This document shows, piece after piece, positions 3 through 8,331 of a stretch of 64,000 nucleotides of DNA. The DNA lies in the sequence record NC_042100.1. The stretch is one strand, 5' to 3'. The position numbers were made by a program, and so were the translations under genes. Under the pieces are notes generated by a model. The model was not told the origin of the DNA. It made no database searches and was given only the letters and a program-made list of their open reading frames with translations. Position 1 is the stretch's first letter. Each line of letters starts with the position of its first letter.

Positions 3-3000
3 GATGAATTCGGTTTCTTTGACGTAAGCTACGACCGTATCGGAGAAGAGTCACATATGTTCGTTCGAGCTAGATGTGGACAAAGCTCTAACTATGACAC
101 CGCTCCTTGGACTGACACTAGCGCACCTCGTTGGGTGGACTTGCAGCTCACGAACCCACCAACTAGCGTGGATAACGATGGAAGTGTCTTCATGAACGGC
201 ATGATGCGAGATCAGGATGGTAATCCTGCTGATCGTGTTGCTTACAGCGTTTATGATGTTCGTAACCGTAGTACCATCGGTGGTCGTAGTAAATCAGACG
301 GTCGCATCGAACCTTTCTTGGACAACATTGCATTGGGTAAAAACCCTGTCGTTGTTACCAGTGCCAACGGGATGGTTAGACATGTAGTCACTTACAAAAA
401 GATGCCAGCTTCCGCTGATATCGTAAGTGGACACAGTGAAGCCTTGGCCTTTGATGGTAATCCTGAAATCACTTATCAGCTGAAGGATAGTGAAGGGAAC
501 AACTACGTTCCTAACGAAGGCGAAGTGGTTAACTTACTTACTCAAAGCGGGCGTTACCAGAAGCACGGTAATCCGGTAGGTCCTACAGGACTAGTCACCA
601 TACCTTGGTTCAACAAAGGTGTAGGACATGAGACTTATATCCTTGCTAACGAAGACATGTCTAAGGCTCTCAACACCACGCCTACTGAACACATCGCGAT
701 TAAGGAAGTTAGGGTGTTCCACGCCAGTGACTACCCTCAGTCCGGTGACCCGGGTATCATGTTGGTAAACGTTCAAGACTTTAACGATAACCCTATCCCT
801 AATATCGAGTTCCGTGTGAAAAGCACTACCGATGGCTTCGAGTTAGATGCGGTTTACAAAACTGATCCCAACGGTGTTGGTAAGGTGCTGTTAGCCGGTC
901 AGTCTGACGGAACAAACATCTCGGTCGAATTGACCTGTGGTAATGCAGTTACAAGTTACTCCATTGGTTGGGAGGATGGAGGTGAGTCTAGTCCCGGAAC
1001 GGTAATTTTAGATGCGTTACCTTCAGAAGCTTCTGAAGACGACGATCTTCCAATCACAGGTAAAGTTGTTGATAGTGAAGGGAATGGGATTAGTGGCGCG
1101 TTCGTTTACTTGTACATAGGGACACCGAATAGTACCTATTACCAAGAGGACTCTGTTAACGCGGATGCCGATGGACGTTTCTCTATCTCTCCTTGGTTGG
1201 AATCAGGAAACAACAGGTTCCTTGTGGTTAACGGGGAAGACTTTGATAGTACCGAAGTGTTGTGTTACTCAACACCAATGGTTACTATGACTAACCTCAC
1301 CATTCGTGATATTCACGAAAATCAGCGTGGTCGTATCTCAGCTCTTTATAAAGACAAGTACGGTAATCCGGTTCAAGGTGAAACCGTTGAGTTCCGATTT
1401 GACAGTGCAAGTGGTGAGTTAATAGATACCAAAACCACTAACGAGAAGGGTCATGCGTGGACTGAAGTTACTTGGGCGCAAGCACAAGGACACAGTGAGA
1501 TTTACGCTGTTTGTAATGGGGCGTCGGACTCTAGCTACATTAACGTTGCAGAAGCGGGTGATGTCACTCCAGTGGTTTCTACTATCGCTTGGCACAACAA
1601 TGTTGGGTTCATCCACCCAGAAATGCCAGCATTGATAATGGGTAAAGTGCTAGACCAACACGGTAACCCGTACTCTAAAGCGGAGGTGAACTATTATCGT
1701 CCTGACATCGGATCAAGGAATATGACTTATACTGACTCAGATGGTAACTTTACCTTAGAGGTCAGTCCGGGTCGTTTCGATCCTACCCGTAAGGATTTGT
1801 TTGGTGTACGTGGTAAGTTTACTGAGATCACCCCTAAGTGGAACATGGGAACCAAGTTCAAGTCTGGAACTATTAAATTTAACAAACCTGATTTTCCTGA
1901 AGGTATTCCATACGACTCAACCATCACCTTATCCGGTGCCGTGAAAGATACTGATGGAAGCATGGCTGAAGTGGGTGACTCTGTAATTAAACTGAAGGCG
2001 CGCGTTCGATCTGAAGGTTCGGAGCTAGGGTTGAAAGAGTTCACGGTTTCACCTGACGGCACTTGGTCCGTTGACATCCCAACACCGGATAAAGAAATTA
2101 AGTTCGATGTCTGGTTGGAAGATGAATACGGGAATGGTTGTGATCGTGTCGCACTTTGGGCAGGTCCGCCTAAGACCAAGACACTAGCGTTTGCTCCACC
2201 TACGCACGACTACATCCCTGAAGGGCAGAATCATACACGAGTGGTTTACTACTTGCTGGATGAGGAAGGAAAACCAATGCCTAACGTATCCATCGACTTT
2301 AAATATAAAGGGGATGCTGATTCTCGTTGGAATTATGGTTCAATGGATCGTACGGATGAAGATGGTCACGTTAACACTCGTATTCAGTTACGCAACAGCA
2401 CGACTATTGAGTTGCGTATTAAAGCTGAAGGGTTAACAACCAAACACACTATCGTCAGAACTAGCGACCCAGTAGGTACGAACTTAGTTGGTGTTTATTA
2501 CCCAGATTCAACCACCGTCTCTCGTGGATTGACTGGCTGGGCTAAGTTAACTGACATTGACGGTAAAGCACTCCCTGACGTTAGTGATGCGAAGATTGGC
2601 ATCTACGACTTGGTAACTAGGGAGACGTATGACTTGAAACCTTGGAAATTGGATAATATCAACTTTGTCTATAACTTTAACCCGCCAGCTGGCAGACACC
2701 GTTTCATGCAGTACTCTGACGCTTACATGGACTACTACCAAGTTCCTAAGGTGGTAGAGGTGACCGAAAGTGATCCTTCTGAGGTGGTAATACCTACACA
2801 AGCAGTATTATCTCCGACCATGAGCAACGGCGGCCTTGTGACACGGTCGAACATGAACGTTAAAACTGGATTCCGTTTAGTAGACGACCAATACCGTGAT
2901 TGGGACGCGACTGGTGAAGTGAATGTTTACGATGATTATGTTGGACTTCTGCGTGAGACCAGATCAGAGGGTGAAGTTCATCAGGTCCGAATATATGACC

Positions 3001-4220
3001 CACTCGATCCGGGTTTACGTACTTGGCGGGTATTTGCTGACTACAAAGAAGTTGGTACAGTCCCAATCTTCATTGTAGAAGGTGACGATGTCATGAACTT
3101 GGTACCGGGTTCTACGGTAATCAACCGGGTGAACAAACCAGCAATAGCGGTGTTTGGTTGTTATTCAGCTAATGACAATACACCTTCAGTTGGTAAGGTC
3201 ATGAGTGTTTGGGAAGTTGGTAAAGAGGGAGCTAAACAAACTCTAACTACTGATGATAGAGGTTTGACATCCTTCAGTCTTCCTGCACAAACTTCACCGG
3301 GTGTTTACAACTACATGGTGGAGTACGACGGTAATCAAGTACCATTCAGTTTCCATTGGGTTCCGGGTGATATGGTATTGGGTGAAAGCTTTGGTGAGAC
3401 ATTCTTCCCGACTGTATGGTCTATGGAAGAGTACCAATCGTTCAAAGCGGAAGTGATTGATCAGAACGGTGATGTGGTGTCAAACGGCGTAGAAGGTATT
3501 TCAATTAAGGACCTTGATGATCCTCAAATGAACTACTGGTACAACATCGACGGTGAATATGTGAGACCGGCTTACTTCACAGAAGGCAAACACCTAATCG
3601 GTATGTCTGCTGGTGCGGCAAGTGAAATGTTTAATATCTTCAGCGGTAATGCTACCGGACTCCGCACTCTGGCTTACGCTCAAGGTAAGGGTCTGGATGG
3701 ACAGAACCTCAAAGTAGCGTTTGGTCTAACTAACGAATCATTCGCACCGATTAATGGTGCGGTGGTTAAAGTGTGGTTAGGAGAAGCCGCTTCTTATTAC
3801 GAGGTAACTACCGACGCTTACGGTATCGCTGAGTTTGACATCCCTCAACCTGAGGGTGTAACCCGTACTTGGTTGATCGCGGAATCAAATGGTCATGAGT
3901 TGAAGATACCGGTTGTTTGGGCTAAGAAACCAACACCAAGTAAATTCAGCGCATTGACAGTTCCGACATCAATCCCGGCGGGATCTAAGTTGGACTTCTC
4001 TGCAACGATCGTTAACCAAGATGACACACCGGACACCATCGATAACTGGAAAGCTATTCATGGTGGTGTGTACGTTAAGGTTAACCAGAAGTTTGAGTAC
4101 TTGTTCTCAGCGTCTGGAGATCATTCGTTGAACATCATTGGTGATCTATCACCGGGTACTCACGAAATTGTGTTCTTCACATTAGCTGGGTACGAGGTGA
4201 AACAAATCACTATCACTTAA
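3..4220 (+). CDS. Large Ig-like/Big-domain repeat structural protein (tail or fibre-associated), 5'-truncated by the window
   Basis: The frame is open from position 3 (DEFGFFDVSYDRIGEESHM), upstream of the track's Met at 57. Many beta-rich repeats of the type G-x-V-x-D-x-x-G-x-P-(I/V)-x-G/N-x-x-V. Followed by a hairpin. Confidence 0.6.
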   Translation, partial: DEFGFFDVSYDRIGEESHMFVRARCGQSSNYDTAPWTDTSAPRWVDLQLTNPPTSVDNDGSVFMNGMMRDQDGNPADRVAYSVYDVRNRSTIGGRSKSDGRIEPFLDNIALGKNPVVVTSANGMVRHVVTYKKMPASADIVSGHSEALAFDGNPEITYQLKDSEGNNYVPNEGEVVNLLTQSGRYQKHGNPVGPTGLVTIPWFNKGVGHETYILANEDMSKALNTTPTEHIAIKEVRVFHASDYPQSGDPGIMLVNVQDFNDNPIPNIEFRVKSTTDGFELDAVYKTDPNGVGKVLLAGQSDGTNISVELTCGNAVTSYSIGWEDGGESSPGTVILDALPSEASEDDDLPITGKVVDSEGNGISGAFVYLYIGTPNSTYYQEDSVNADADGRFSISPWLESGNNRFLVVNGEDFDSTEVLCYSTPMVTMTNLTIRDIHENQRGRISALYKDKYGNPVQGETVEFRFDSASGELIDTKTTNEKGHAWTEVTWAQAQGHSEIYAVCNGASDSSYINVAEAGDVTPVVSTIAWHNNVGFIHPEMPALIMGKVLDQHGNPYSKAEVNYYRPDIGSRNMTYTDSDGNFTLEVSPGRFDPTRKDLFGVRGKFTEITPKWNMGTKFKSGTIKFNKPDFPEGIPYDSTITLSGAVKDTDGSMAEVGDSVIKLKARVRSEGSELGLKEFTVSPDGTWSVDIPTPDKEIKFDVWLEDEYGNGCDRVALWAGPPKTKTLAFAPPTHDYIPEGQNHTRVVYYLLDEEGKPMPNVSIDFKYKGDADSRWNYGSMDRTDEDGHVNTRIQLRNSTTIELRIKAEGLTTKHTIVRTSDPVGTNLVGVYYPDSTTVSRGLTGWAKLTDIDGKALPDVSDAKIGIYDLVTRETYDLKPWKLDNINFVYNFNPPAGRHRFMQYSDAYMDYYQVPKVVEVTESDPSEVVIPTQAVLSPTMSNGGLVTRSNMNVKTGFRLVDDQYRDWDATGEVNVYDDYVGLLRETRSEGEVHQVRIYDPLDPGLRTWRVFADYKEVGTVPIFIVEGDDVMNLVPGSTVINRVNKPAIAVFGCYSANDNTPSVGKVMSVWEVGKEGAKQTLTTDDRGLTSFSLPAQTSPGVYNYMVEYDGNQVPFSFHWVPGDMVLGESFGETFFPTVWSMEEYQSFKAEVIDQNGDVVSNGVEGISIKDLDDPQMNYWYNIDGEYVRPAYFTEGKHLIGMSAGAASEMFNIFSGNATGLRTLAYAQGKGLDGQNLKVAFGLTNESFAPINGAVVKVWLGEAASYYEVTTDAYGIAEFDIPQPEGVTRTWLIAESNGHELKIPVVWAKKPTPSKFSALTVPTSIPAGSKLDFSATIVNQDDTPDTIDNWKAIHGGVYVKVNQKFEYLFSASGDHSLNIIGDLSPGTHEIVFFTLAGYEVKQITIT

Positions 4221-4308: not shown

Positions 4309-7300
4309 ATGGGTGCCAAATTAGAATTTAATTTCAATGAACAAGAACAAGTTTTAAAGTATTTAAATATCCAAAAAGAAACGATCCCAGAGCAATTAGT
4401 GGATGAACCTTCGGACGACGTACCGGAGCGCAACTGGGAAGAGTTATTAAGAGCACACTGGGAGGAAGACTCTTTACGTTCGATTAAGACTGTGCGCTTC
4501 ATGAAAGACTTTGAACGCTACCGTGCAAGACCGGACATGAAGACAACCAACAAGTCCTTTATTCGTACTATGGATGTATTCCGTCGTATGGGTGTCAAGA
4601 ACTGTGCATTCCATTTACAACTCAATAACCCGATGTTGGTTGGAGTGGATCCTCGTTCCCCGGACCTAACCGATGATCAACGCCTGATGATCATGAAAGA
4701 GATGCAAGAGAACTTCTGGTATTTCTTACGAGAAGTGTGTCACTTGAACGGAGGTATTCGCTTCCGTGCTAACCGTGCTAACATTTCCTTTGCGTGGTGT
4801 TGGTTGAATCACTTGACCACCATGCTGATACTTCCACGTCAGCAAGGGAAAGAATTGTCCGTTGATGCTAAAATCAAAACTATGAACGGATGGGTTCGAA
4901 ACGGGGATCTTAAACCCGGTGACATAGTTTTAGCTTCAGACGGTTCTCCGGTCAAGGTTAAACAAGTTTACCCTCAAGGAGTGAAACCTCTATATTGGGT
5001 GACCATGGAAGATGGACGAAAAGTTAAAGCAGGACTTGATCACTTATGGAAAGTGTTTGATTGCGGACAGGATACTTGGAAGGTTTCCAGTACAAAGGAA
5101 TTAATGACCGAGTTATGTAAAGGTCGGAAATACACTATTCCAATTGCTTACCCGGAACACAAATCCGACGTTAAGTTACCTGTACATCCTTGGTTGCTAG
5201 GTATGATCTTGGGTGGCAATGGTATCACTGGTGCGTTGTCCCATATAGGGAATCAAGACGTTAACGTTCGTCGTAAACTAGACCATATCCTAAACCTCCA
5301 TGACAAACCCATTGTGACGGGGAAGGAAATTCCGGATGAATACTTCAATGCTTCTTACGTCCAGCGTGTGGAGCTCATACAAGGTCTGATGGATAGTCAT
5401 GGGGAAGTTACACCTACGGGCAACTTACTGTGGGTGAATGACGACGTGGCGTTTAACGTTCGTTTGACGGAACTCATCCGTTCGGTGGGCGGTGTGGTTT
5501 ATTCAAGTGAAGACGGAACGTGTTTAGAAATCAATGACCCTGCGTTGGACTTGTTAGTTTCCGTACAACATAAGAAAACCATGTTGAAACGTAACTCTAA
5601 AGGAGTACCAAGGCCCACTCAAATAGAGATCACTTCCATCGAGTACGCGGGCGATGAAGAAGCGCTTTGTATCGAGATTGATCACCCGAGTCATTTGTAT
5701 GTTACCGACGATTACATTGTAACACATAATACCGTTACAGCACAGTGTATCTTTTTCTGGTTAACTTACATCTCTGGTCGTGCTTATGAATCTCACCTTA
5801 TTACGCTAAAAGACGATAACCGCCAACAATTCGTTGACGCAATCAAAGGGATACGTAACAACATCCCAGCTTGGATGACAAACGTCACTTACCGAGATAA
5901 AGACGCGGGTAACTCGTTAACGTATTCAGCGTTTGGTGATGAAGTTAAGAACAAACTCACTATCTCAGTTCCTCAGATTGGGCAAGAAGCAGCACGAAAC
6001 GTTGGTCGTGGTTTAACCATCAAATCTCGTTTCATAGATGAACCTGCGTACATTAAGTGGATGGAAGAAATTCTCAACGGTGCCGGTCCTTCTACGTTGA
6101 CCGCTCGTGAGAACGCTCGTCGATTAAACGAGCCTTACGCCACCGGGTTCATTACAACACCTGCTAGTATCTTAACGGAATCCGGGCAGTACATGTACAA
6201 CATCCTCATGGAGTCTACGGAGTGGCGTGAAAACTATTTCGATACTTACGGGGAATCTCATCTTTACGATGTATTGTTGAAGAATGCTCCTAAGGCTACC
6301 ACCAGTCCTTCAGTAGGTATGGTGTTCAACTACTTACAACTTGGTAAAAATCGAGATTGGGTTAAGAAGACCATTGATGAACTTAAGCTTTCACTTAGTG
6401 AGGCTAAGATCGACTTGCTGTTGATGTGGGATGACAACGGTAAAGGTAAGTTATTCGATGATGAAACTCGTGACGCTTTGAATGAAGCCAAACGAGGTCG
6501 TAGTTGGAGTCAACAAATCTCCGGGACGTCGTTGTTCTTTGACTGGTTCATCTCCCAAGAAGAACACGCAGAGATCATGAGTGGTGGTAAAAACTCTACG
6601 TTCTACTTGATTGGACTGGATACATCTGGAGCGGTAGGTCGAGATGCTTGTACTATTGTAGTACGAGATATCCGAGATGGTTCTGTAGCGGGCGTAGGGC
6701 GCTATCAGCGTGCTTTCTTAACCGAGGTAGGGATGGTAGTCCAAACGTTGCTCATGGAGCTTCCTAATTCGTTATTGATACCAGAACGTAACTACGCTCA
6801 CCACATGATCGATCAGTTACTACAATCTCTCCCTGCGATGGGACTCGATCCTTTTAAGAAAATCTACAACCGCATCTTCCAAGACCCAATGCGTTACCAA
6901 AACCATTACCGCGATATCAAAGCTCGCACCTTTGGTAACCGAAATGATGTGTTCTATCTCAAGTACAAAGAGTTCTTTGGATTTAACACTGGAGCGAAGT
7001 CTCGTGAAGTAATGTATGGTTTCTTAGAGGAAGCTGTGAGCTTAACCGGAACGGGAACCCGATACACCAAACTTATCGACGAGTTAACCAACTTGAAGAT
7101 TAAGAATGGACGTATAGACCACGACACCGGTAATCACGATGATATCGTAATCAGCTGGTTGTTGACGTACTGGTTTATTAAGTTGGGTGAAAACAAAAAC
7201 GAGTACGGTATCCCTGCGGGTATAGCGTTGAGTAACGTTGATATGTTGAAGCTCGGTGAGACTAAGAAAGAGTTGTCGGATCCTGTTAAACAAAAACGCA

Positions 7301-7524
7301 TTGCTTTCTATCGACAAAAAATCGAAGAGGTCAGTGCGAAATTAATGGAAACCGATGAACCTGTTATCGTAGCACGTTTAGAGGTGGCTCTGGATCGTTT
7401 ACGTGAAATGGTTCCAGCGGATGTGCGTAAATCTATCACTATTGACGATATTAAACGTCAAGCTGAAGCTGAACGCAACCGTAGAGCTCTGGAAAGTAAA
7501 CGTTCGAAATTCCGTAACCGATAA
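4309..7524 (+). CDS. terL: Terminase large subunit (phiKZ gp25-like), intein-containing
   Basis: Walker A LPRQQGK/T is interrupted by an intein. Walker B RFIDEP. RNase H-like nuclease motifs LIGLDTSG and HDDIVIS. Confidence 0.92.
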   Translation: MGAKLEFNFNEQEQVLKYLNIQKETIPEQLVDEPSDDVPERNWEELLRAHWEEDSLRSIKTVRFMKDFERYRARPDMKTTNKSFIRTMDVFRRMGVKNCAFHLQLNNPMLVGVDPRSPDLTDDQRLMIMKEMQENFWYFLREVCHLNGGIRFRANRANISFAWCWLNHLTTMLILPRQQGKELSVDAKIKTMNGWVRNGDLKPGDIVLASDGSPVKVKQVYPQGVKPLYWVTMEDGRKVKAGLDHLWKVFDCGQDTWKVSSTKELMTELCKGRKYTIPIAYPEHKSDVKLPVHPWLLGMILGGNGITGALSHIGNQDVNVRRKLDHILNLHDKPIVTGKEIPDEYFNASYVQRVELIQGLMDSHGEVTPTGNLLWVNDDVAFNVRLTELIRSVGGVVYSSEDGTCLEINDPALDLLVSVQHKKTMLKRNSKGVPRPTQIEITSIEYAGDEEALCIEIDHPSHLYVTDDYIVTHNTVTAQCIFFWLTYISGRAYESHLITLKDDNRQQFVDAIKGIRNNIPAWMTNVTYRDKDAGNSLTYSAFGDEVKNKLTISVPQIGQEAARNVGRGLTIKSRFIDEPAYIKWMEEILNGAGPSTLTARENARRLNEPYATGFITTPASILTESGQYMYNILMESTEWRENYFDTYGESHLYDVLLKNAPKATTSPSVGMVFNYLQLGKNRDWVKKTIDELKLSLSEAKIDLLLMWDDNGKGKLFDDETRDALNEAKRGRSWSQQISGTSLFFDWFISQEEHAEIMSGGKNSTFYLIGLDTSGAVGRDACTIVVRDIRDGSVAGVGRYQRAFLTEVGMVVQTLLMELPNSLLIPERNYAHHMIDQLLQSLPAMGLDPFKKIYNRIFQDPMRYQNHYRDIKARTFGNRNDVFYLKYKEFFGFNTGAKSREVMYGFLEEAVSLTGTGTRYTKLIDELTNLKIKNGRIDHDTGNHDDIVISWLLTYWFIKLGENKNEYGIPAGIALSNVDMLKLGETKKELSDPVKQKRIAFYRQKIEEVSAKLMETDEPVIVARLEVALDRLREMVPADVRKSITIDDIKRQAEAERNRRALESKRSKFRNR
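4852..5730 (+). mobile_element. Class 3 intein (293 aa) with a degenerate LAGLIDADG domain, inside TerL Walker A
   Basis: Starts ELSVDAKIKT after RQQGK and ends YIVTHN before Thr+1. Block B GLDHLWKV, block F ALCIEID, block G VTHN (W-C-T triad). Removal restores RQQGKTVTAQ. Confidence 0.9.
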
Positions 7525-7707: not shown

Positions 7708-8331
7708 TTACAATGCTAATCGTTTTAACTCTTCGTAGACGAAATCCGGATCGTTAGAAGTGATCACTTTAACTCCAGATGATAAAGATAATGTTTTTAT
7801 TGCTTTCTTGTATTCTTTTTGGAAACGTTCGAAGTTTTCCGGTTTACTAATGTAACTTTCTACGTACTCAGTTTCTGGACGATCTTTACCTAGACGTTCT
7901 AAGTAAGTGGCGTGATCAGTTTGCAAGTAAACAATGACATCCGGGACCACGTTTCTCTCTAGGAAACGACCACCTTGTAAGTTACTCAACAAAATAGCGC
8001 AAGCATCATGATCTGCGTCTTGTTGGTAAACCATCGACGTTAATAGACAACGATCGGTGATTACTTGTTCTCCGGCTTTAAGCGCCGGGATAACACACTC
8101 TTGATAAAGGGCAACACGTTGACCGACACTGCAATGGATTTGAGCCACCTTAGGGATGTTGGGTGAGATAATCATTTTACGTAAGGCTCGCCATTCCTCA
8201 GAATCTTTACGAGGTTCTGCAAACACGACAGGGGCTTTCAGACCATCCTTCAACATCTTGTTTGTGATTTCTTGAATAAGGGTGGACTTGCCAGAATAAT
8301 CCAAGCCTTCGAACGCAATTACTTTTTTCAA
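7708..8331 (-). CDS. tmk: Thymidylate (dTMP) kinase
   Basis: P-loop AFEGLDYSGKST, FAEP, DRCLLTSMVYQ, PDVIVYL. TTG start with an upstream AAAGGA. Confidence 0.9.
   Translation of the reverse strand: MKKVIAFEGLDYSGKSTLIQEITNKMLKDGLKAPVVFAEPRKDSEEWRALRKMIISPNIPKVAQIHCSVGQRVALYQECVIPALKAGEQVITDRCLLTSMVYQQDADHDACAILLSNLQGGRFLERNVVPDVIVYLQTDHATYLERLGKDRPETEYVESYISKPENFERFQKEYKKAIKTLSLSSGVKVITSNDPDFVYEELKRLAL

Follow-up and report, generated by a model that had tools for sequence, protein, structure and literature searches.

The only large terminase (TerL) gene of Vibrio phage Aphrodite1 is interrupted at PRQQGK|T by what we take, with a probability of roughly 0.87, to be a class 3 intein in which the homing-endonuclease domain has decayed and for which splicing is predicted to go by way of Cys273. 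It is an ordinary class 3 P-loop intein, and it is already catalogued as class 3, the RefSeq protein for the precursor (YP_009622170.1) being among the class 3 inteins in Table S4 of Hoffmann et al. 2020 (PMC7891396). We found no paper in the literature that discusses it. What is new here is the presence of three deeply diverged intein lineages at this one TerL site, and an endonuclease domain that is degenerate and yet under purifying selection. The useful outputs of the analysis are a corrected annotation, a measured spectrum for residue 1 and a description of the decayed but conserved endonuclease remnant.

The TerL gene and the position of the intein

The DNA analysed (the window) is a stretch of 64,000 nucleotides from the genome of Aphrodite1 (MG720308 / NC_042100), to which the region is 100% identical. 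Aphrodite1, a jumbo phage that infects Vibrio alginolyticus and has a genome of 238 kb, is placed in the genus Aphroditevirus of the subfamily Gorgonvirinae. The features that we discuss are given in Table 1. The frame of the precursor gene is uninterrupted and free of stop codons across both intein junctions. An intein-free homologue matches the PHROG family phrog_2, “terminase large subunit”, with an E value of 5e-55, and tblastn with the C-terminal part as query finds homologues in 311 phage records, among them those of the phiKZ-like EL and RisingSun. Both the sequence family and the Walker A motif that is restored on excision thus put the protein with the phiKZ-like large terminases. The same query matches at a single place in the Aphrodite1 genome, and the gene is therefore the sole large terminase of the phage. 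We also looked within the 64-kb window for another copy of TerL and for another intein, and found neither.

Table 1. Features of the intein-bearing TerL gene of Aphrodite1 (positions in the window) and of two other inteins at the same site
Feature	Position	Strand	Remarks
TerL precursor ORF	4309..7524	+	1071 aa, 122.8 kDa; phiKZ-like jumbo-phage large terminase
N-extein, aa 1-181, ending ...LPRQQGK, the first part of Walker A	4309..4851	+	Alignment with VP4B and pTD1
Class 3 intein, 293 aa, 32.7 kDa, precursor residues 182-474	4852..5730	+	Glu...His-Asn
Glu1 codon GAA	4852..4854	+	GAA or GAG in 6/6 intein-bearing phage genomes
Block B His64-Leu65-Trp66 (B10, B11, B12)	5041..5049	+	His and Trp invariant in 62/62 relatives
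Nested LAGLIDADG-like domain, intein residues ~105-250, shortened and degenerate	5164..5601	+	Foldseek PI-SceI, TliVMA, PI-PfuI
LAGLIDADG motif 1 remnant LLGMILGGNG	5194..5223	+	Catalytic Asp replaced by Gly122; Asp in 52/62 relatives
LAGLIDADG motif 2 remnant LIQGLMDSHG	5374..5403	+	Catalytic Asp replaced by His183; Asp in 50/62 relatives
Cys273 (block F4), predicted initiating nucleophile	5668..5670	+	Invariant in 62/62; aligned to F4 Cys of 6bs8 and 6rix
Block G Thr291-His292-Asn293 (G5-G7)	5722..5730	+	THN in 195/198 related copies
Thr+1 (ACC), first C-extein residue, the Thr of Walker A GKT	5731..5733	+	Alignment with intein-free homologues
C-extein, aa 475-1071, and stop codon	5731..7524	+	Alignment with intein-free homologues; tblastn
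phiKT1028 same-site intein	L003:1529-2428		44% identical to the Aphrodite1 intein
P0001 same-site intein, metagenomic	P0001:182-475		Intein 47%, exteins 86% identical to Aphrodite1

The boundaries are fixed by the TerL proteins of phages VP4B and pTD1 (777 aa), in which precisely the 293 residues of the intein are missing and the sequence is LPRQQGK|TVTAQ. In Aphrodite1 the codons GGG AAA for Gly-Lys (4846-4851) stand immediately before the Glu codon, and ACA CAT AAT for Thr-His-Asn is followed directly by ACC. The position of the gap is unique at the protein level, because the residues at the two ends of the insert are not those that flank it (Glu as against Thr, Lys as against Asn). The initial annotation had read the junctions as RQQGK|ELSVDAK...VTHN|TVTAQ. 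Its coordinates are exact, and a different junction in intein-free homologues, which would have spoken against it, is not what VP4B and pTD1 give, both having the same GK|TVT junction. An alternative start at Ser3 is ruled out, since Glu-Leu is absent from the intein-free homologues. The product expected after excision reads LPRQQGKTVTAQ, with the GKT of Walker A intact, and is the same there as in VP4B and pTD1. The precursor has a computed mass of 122.8 kDa, the spliced TerL one of 90.1 kDa and the intein one of 32.7 kDa.

Class 3 signatures, fold and relatives

[quoted passage not shown] By definition they have a residue 1 that is not a nucleophile and co-varies with a Trp-Cys-Thr (WCT) triplet, with Thr or Ser at +1. 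Their hosts are helicase-like proteins, phage terminase large subunits among them, in which the ATPase P-loop is the usual site (PMC2807308). All of these features are seen in the Aphrodite1 intein: residue 1 is not Cys, Ser or Thr, there are Trp at B12, Cys at F4 and Thr at G5 with the following His-Asn, and the +1 residue is Thr. The W-C-T triad had been recognised earlier as HLW, the Cys of ALCIEID (which is Cys273) and the block G Thr, and it is indeed present, its Trp and Cys aligning with those of the solved class 3 inteins.

An alignment of 62 sequences, made up of the window intein and search-returned proteins only, has His64, Trp66, Cys273 and Asn293 invariant. Tyr283 (F15) is Tyr or Phe in all 62, Thr291 and His292 are each present in 61, and Ile274 is nearly invariant. 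Mutagenesis of the DnaB intein of Mycobacteriophage Bethlehem (MP-Be) has shown the B10 His, B12 Trp, F4 Cys, F5 Ile, F15 aromatic residue and C-terminal Asn to be important (PMC2807308), and the conserved positions in our alignment coincide with these.

Searched with phmmer against 1.84 billion representative proteins, the intein has 13,841 matches at E<=1e-3 and 417 at E<=1e-30, which we judge to be far beyond chance. The best 150 of the 13,841 matched proteins contain 198 intein copies, and Trp B12 and Cys F4 are both present in 197 of them, which groups the Aphrodite1 intein with class 3 by sequence. In the same 198 copies the +1 residue is Thr in 156, Ser in 37 and Cys in 5. The nearest solved structures by sequence are likewise class 3 inteins, those of Mycobacterium smegmatis DnaB (6bs8, E 3.9e-9) and M. 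chimaera DnaB (6rix and 6riy). The solved class 3 inteins match at E values of 4e-9 to 1e-7, with residue 2 on residue 2 and Cys273 on the F4 Cys, and an engineered WCT variant of gp41-1 is also among the matches. Many of the top phmmer matches are proteins of 1000-2200 aa with two or more class 3 inteins each, and in some the inteins are back to back, as in P0002, where one ends in THN and the next begins at the following Cys. Some relatives begin with Cys or Ser yet keep the full WCT triplet.

The AlphaFold2 model made on the 62-sequence alignment is a HINT fold with a pLDDT of 93.8 and a pTM of 0.91, and when compared with the PDB by Foldseek it matches only inteins and HINT relatives. The whole model matches endonuclease-bearing inteins (PI-SceI, TliVMA, PhoVMA and PI-PfuI), and the HINT part matches class 3 mini-inteins with TM scores of 0.75-0.80 normalised by target. 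Pfam is too insensitive for this intein, the precursor being unmatched as a whole and the intein alone giving only Intein_splicing at E 0.06, under the cut-off; PHROGs, PDB sequences and the representative library were the informative sources.

Alleles at the same site

Three intein lineages are found at this TerL site, and are only 44-50% identical in proteins that are 85-93% identical in the exteins. The phiKT1028 and metagenomic P0001 inteins share with that of Aphrodite1 the insertion site, a short degenerate endonuclease remnant, the WCT triplet and THN|T, in exteins that are 86-91% identical. They differ from it in the low identity of the inteins (44-50%), and P0001 also in having Met1 instead of Glu1. 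The phiKT1028 allele keeps Glu1, HLW, the F4 Cys and THN|T.

Wherever dS can be measured among the five Aphrodite-type alleles, the intein has a dN/dS ratio of 0.02-0.07, although many dS values are saturated, which weakens these figures. Between Aphrodite1 and USC-1 the intein has a dS of 0.72 and a dN/dS of 0.069. For the same pair dS is 0.75 in the N-extein and 0.16 in the C-extein, for which the proteins are 100% identical. The fall in dS from 0.72 in the intein to 0.16 in the C-extein suggests that recombination has taken place, with a breakpoint at the C-terminal splice junction or close to it. A 3.8 kb marine metagenome contig covers both junctions with 65 differences and no gap, and the intein-bearing form therefore circulates in nature; no gap-joined form was seen in DNA contigs.

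Glutamate at residue 1

It had been pointed out that Glu at residue 1 makes the standard acyl shift impossible, and the intein-free homologues bear this out by confirming that residue 1 is Glu. The initial annotation also considered Glu1 to be unusual and proposed that class 3 alignments be searched for it. We counted residue 1 in the 130 related copies, from the best 150 of the 13,841 matched proteins, that are inserted in a P-loop as GK|...N|[T/S/C]. Ala is the most frequent (86), followed by Glu (8), Asp (7), Phe (6), Gly (5), Leu (4), Met (4), Cys (4), Ser (3), Gln (2) and Arg (1). Residue 1 was mapped by extrapolation from the starts of local alignments, and starts beyond query position 8 are unreliable (as for P0068 and P0051) and were left out of the 130. 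Glu1 is thus in the minority (about 6%, 8 of 130), and in that sense unusual, but it is not new, and is polyphyletic across unrelated hosts. The copies with Glu1 are in SNF2-family helicases, a DEAD-box helicase, DnaB, a DUF5906 (D5-like) primase-helicase and unassigned proteins. In a FastTree tree of 185 splicing domains, made with residue 1 removed, 10 changes are needed to account for the 10 Glu tips, as many as with shuffled labels, and as the tree is of low resolution 10 is an upper bound; the Glu tips being as scattered as shuffled labels, Glu1 therefore arose repeatedly.

The published class 3 inteins that we checked have Pro (MP-Be DnaB), Ala (ABCat TerL and the M. smegmatis and M. chimaera DnaB inteins) or Gly (Halley TerL) at this position. 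The MP-Be DnaB intein still splices, at a reduced level, with its Pro1 changed to Ala, Ser or Cys (PMC2807308). We found no published discussion of Glu1 in inteins, the one match in the literature being to extein residue numbering (PMC7891396). Table S2 of Kelley 2016 gives coordinates only (PMC5050341), and Hoffmann 2020 tabulates the WCT triplet and not residue 1 (PMC7891396). We see Glu1 as a minority state at a weakly constrained position, with no mechanistic novelty, and for intein biology it is a data point rather than a concept: residue 1 is widely variable, with Ala, Pro, Glu, Asp, Phe, Met, Gly and others.

All six phage alleles have retained Glu1 although their synonymous divergence is saturated, and the allele at the same site in the metagenomic TerL P0001 begins with Met. 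One can imagine that position 1, being freed from catalysis, serves as a tuning knob that sets the rate or conditions of splicing and so the timing of late terminase activation, or as a mark for disposal of the excised intein, with the endonuclease remnant also having a retained role, but we think this quite unlikely. With regard to disposal, the Bpt transferase of Vibrio renders N-terminal Asp and Glu destabilising.

Splicing

That the intein splices, and that it uses Cys273 to do so, we infer from the observed junction, motifs, fold, homology, selection and single copy of the gene. Splicing is expected because the GK|T of the only TerL is split in phages that have been isolated and propagated, because all catalytic positions are intact, because the intein is under purifying selection (dN/dS 0.02-0.07 where measurable), and because the phiKT1028 allele, although only 44% identical, still has Glu1, HLW, the F4 Cys and THN|T. 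The earlier proposal that packaging depends on splicing is a sound one, given that there is only one TerL in the genome. Removal of the insert at the RNA level is a moot alternative given the in-frame HINT domain.

The predicted mechanism is taken by homology from the MP-Be DnaB intein. The thiol of Cys273, aided by His64 and Trp66, would attack the Lys181-Glu182 bond and so take the N-extein onto the Cys side chain as a branched thioester, and the N-extein would then be transferred to the hydroxyl of Thr+1. Asn293 would cyclise with the help of His292 to release the intein, and an O-to-N acyl shift would give the native Lys-Thr bond of the mature TerL with its GKT intact. Glu1 would be a passive, non-nucleophilic occupant of position 1 throughout.

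There are two other ways in which the sequence could be read. As residue 1 is non-nucleophilic, as it is in the class 2 KlbA inteins, Thr+1 could attack the N-terminal junction directly, with Cys273 having only a structural role. However, class 2 inteins have no WCT triplet, and the only ones known are those of archaeal KlbA, which begin with Ala1 (PMC2807308), the F4 Cys is kept in all 62 aligned relatives, and in the prototype MP-Be DnaB intein the substitutions C320A and C320S abolish both splicing and N-cleavage (PMC2807308), all of which makes such a route very improbable. We give still less credence to a dead intein or tolerated non-splicing insertion, with packaging achieved by other means. 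There is a published precedent for an inactive class 3-like element in the Arth_1007 pseudo-intein of Arthrobacter FB24 (PMC3196547), and the Aphrodite1 endonuclease domain has already decayed, but Arth_1007 lacks the F4 Cys, whereas the Aphrodite1 intein has this and every other catalytic residue. Furthermore the GK|T that is split belongs to the only TerL of phages isolated as plaque-formers, and purifying selection is strong over the whole intein. Splicing by the class 3 pathway through Cys273 is thus the reading that we prefer.

The endonuclease remnant

The consensus of the relatives is LLGxLLGDG at motif 1 and LLQGLMDTDG at motif 2, and alignment of the remnants with LGDG and MDTDG, together with the Foldseek matches, identifies two LAGLIDADG helices in an intein-nested endonuclease fold. 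Neither motif ends in the acidic catalytic residue, these positions having become Gly122 and His183. Nor does the model have the two alpha-beta-beta-alpha-beta-beta-alpha halves that form the DNA-binding saddle, as the first half of the domain (model residues 118-154) is helices only and strands are present in the second half only. In relatives of 340-370 aa the domain is longer by about 50-60 aa. In phiKT1028 (SEGG, MDVNG) and P0001 (AAGG, MDVKG) the remnant has undergone the same decay and has the same length as in Aphrodite1. TerL apart, the intein contains no ORF of 60 aa or more on either strand, and hence no nested free-standing endonuclease gene.

Homing has probably been lost, because both catalytic Asp residues and half of the DNA-binding sheet have been lost; the Aphrodite1 element thus probably homes no longer and is inherited vertically. 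The remnant nevertheless has a dN/dS of 0.03-0.06, as low as that of the exteins. In our view there is purifying selection because the protein is essential and its precursor has to fold and to splice, but a retained non-nuclease role for the remnant could also explain it. The selection could be taken to mean that the domain is still an active homing endonuclease that makes use of non-canonical residues, and that the element is mobile; the intein-free alleles of VP4B and pTD1, which have a near-identical target site, and the Glu close to motif 1 in the phiKT1028 allele (SEGG) would fit with this. We consider it improbable, as the two catalytic positions have changed from Asp, one to Gly and the other to His, and as the confident model shows no beta strands in the first half of the domain. 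The low dN/dS may also reflect the need to fold for splicing of an essential protein, and decay that is common to three lineages only 44-50% identical suggests long vertical descent without homing. The simplest reading is long vertical persistence of a non-homing intein, which was precisely lost in, or never gained by, the line of pTD1 and VP4B. To intein biology the case adds a further data point, that of an intein able to remain in an essential phage gene well after the decay of its endonuclease.

Comparison with known inteins

The class 3 prototype, the MP-Be DnaB intein (Tori et al. 2010, PMC2807308), has in common with that of Aphrodite1 a non-nucleophilic residue 1, the block B His10 and Trp12, the block F Cys4-Ile5, Asp9, His13 and aromatic residue 15, Thr-His-Asn with Thr+1, a phage ATPase as host and a nested LAGLIDADG-type domain. 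It differs in having Pro1 rather than Glu1, in being in a DnaB helicase rather than TerL, in its length (341 aa as against 293 aa) and in its endonuclease, which is apparently active, as it is reported to be toxic in E. coli, whereas that of Aphrodite1 is degenerate.

The Lys|Thr site is the “classic” P-loop insertion site in mycobacteriophage TerL (Kelley et al. 2016, PMC5050341). Among the TerL1-a “classic P-loop” inteins found there, that of ABCat gp8 (NGK|ALDVETPILT...THN|T) has the same WCT features as the Aphrodite1 intein. However the ABCat intein has Ala1, is in a TerL of the siphovirus TerL1 family and not in one of the phiKZ-like jumbo-phage type, is only about 28% identical, and has intact endonuclease motifs (LGDG and MDTDG). 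The M. smegmatis DnaBi1 (6bs8) and M. chimaera DnaB1 (6rix and 6riy) inteins are also at a P-loop, inserted after GK, and have the WCT triplet, but they are mini-inteins with no endonuclease domain, have Ala1 and are in a bacterial DnaB.

Annotation and neighbouring genes

The product names in the databases for this TerL gene disagree and are in part wrong, and none of them mentions the intein. The gene is labelled “DarB-like antirestriction” in the RefSeq Aphrodite1 record and in PDCC-1, “putative ATP-dependent DNA helicase” in phiKT1019 and phiKT1028, and “hypothetical protein” or “terminase large subunit” in further records. The practical value of the analysis is in annotation: the gene is that of an intein-interrupted large terminase, and the mature packaging ATPase has 778 aa, not 1071 aa. 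The corrected length is relevant to expression, modelling and proteomics of the jumbo Vibrio phages of the nucleus-forming type.

Upstream of the TerL gene there is a very long ORF on the same strand (57-4220), with 1387 aa in the window and 7.6 kb in the full gene, which is labelled “putative invasin” in Aphrodite1 and “TonB family protein / TonB-dependent receptor” in USC-1. Its product looks repetitive and is probably a large virion or structural protein. Directly downstream, on the opposite strand (7708-8331), is an ORF of 207 aa that corresponds to the gene labelled thymidylate kinase in pTD1, USC-1 and phiKT1028.
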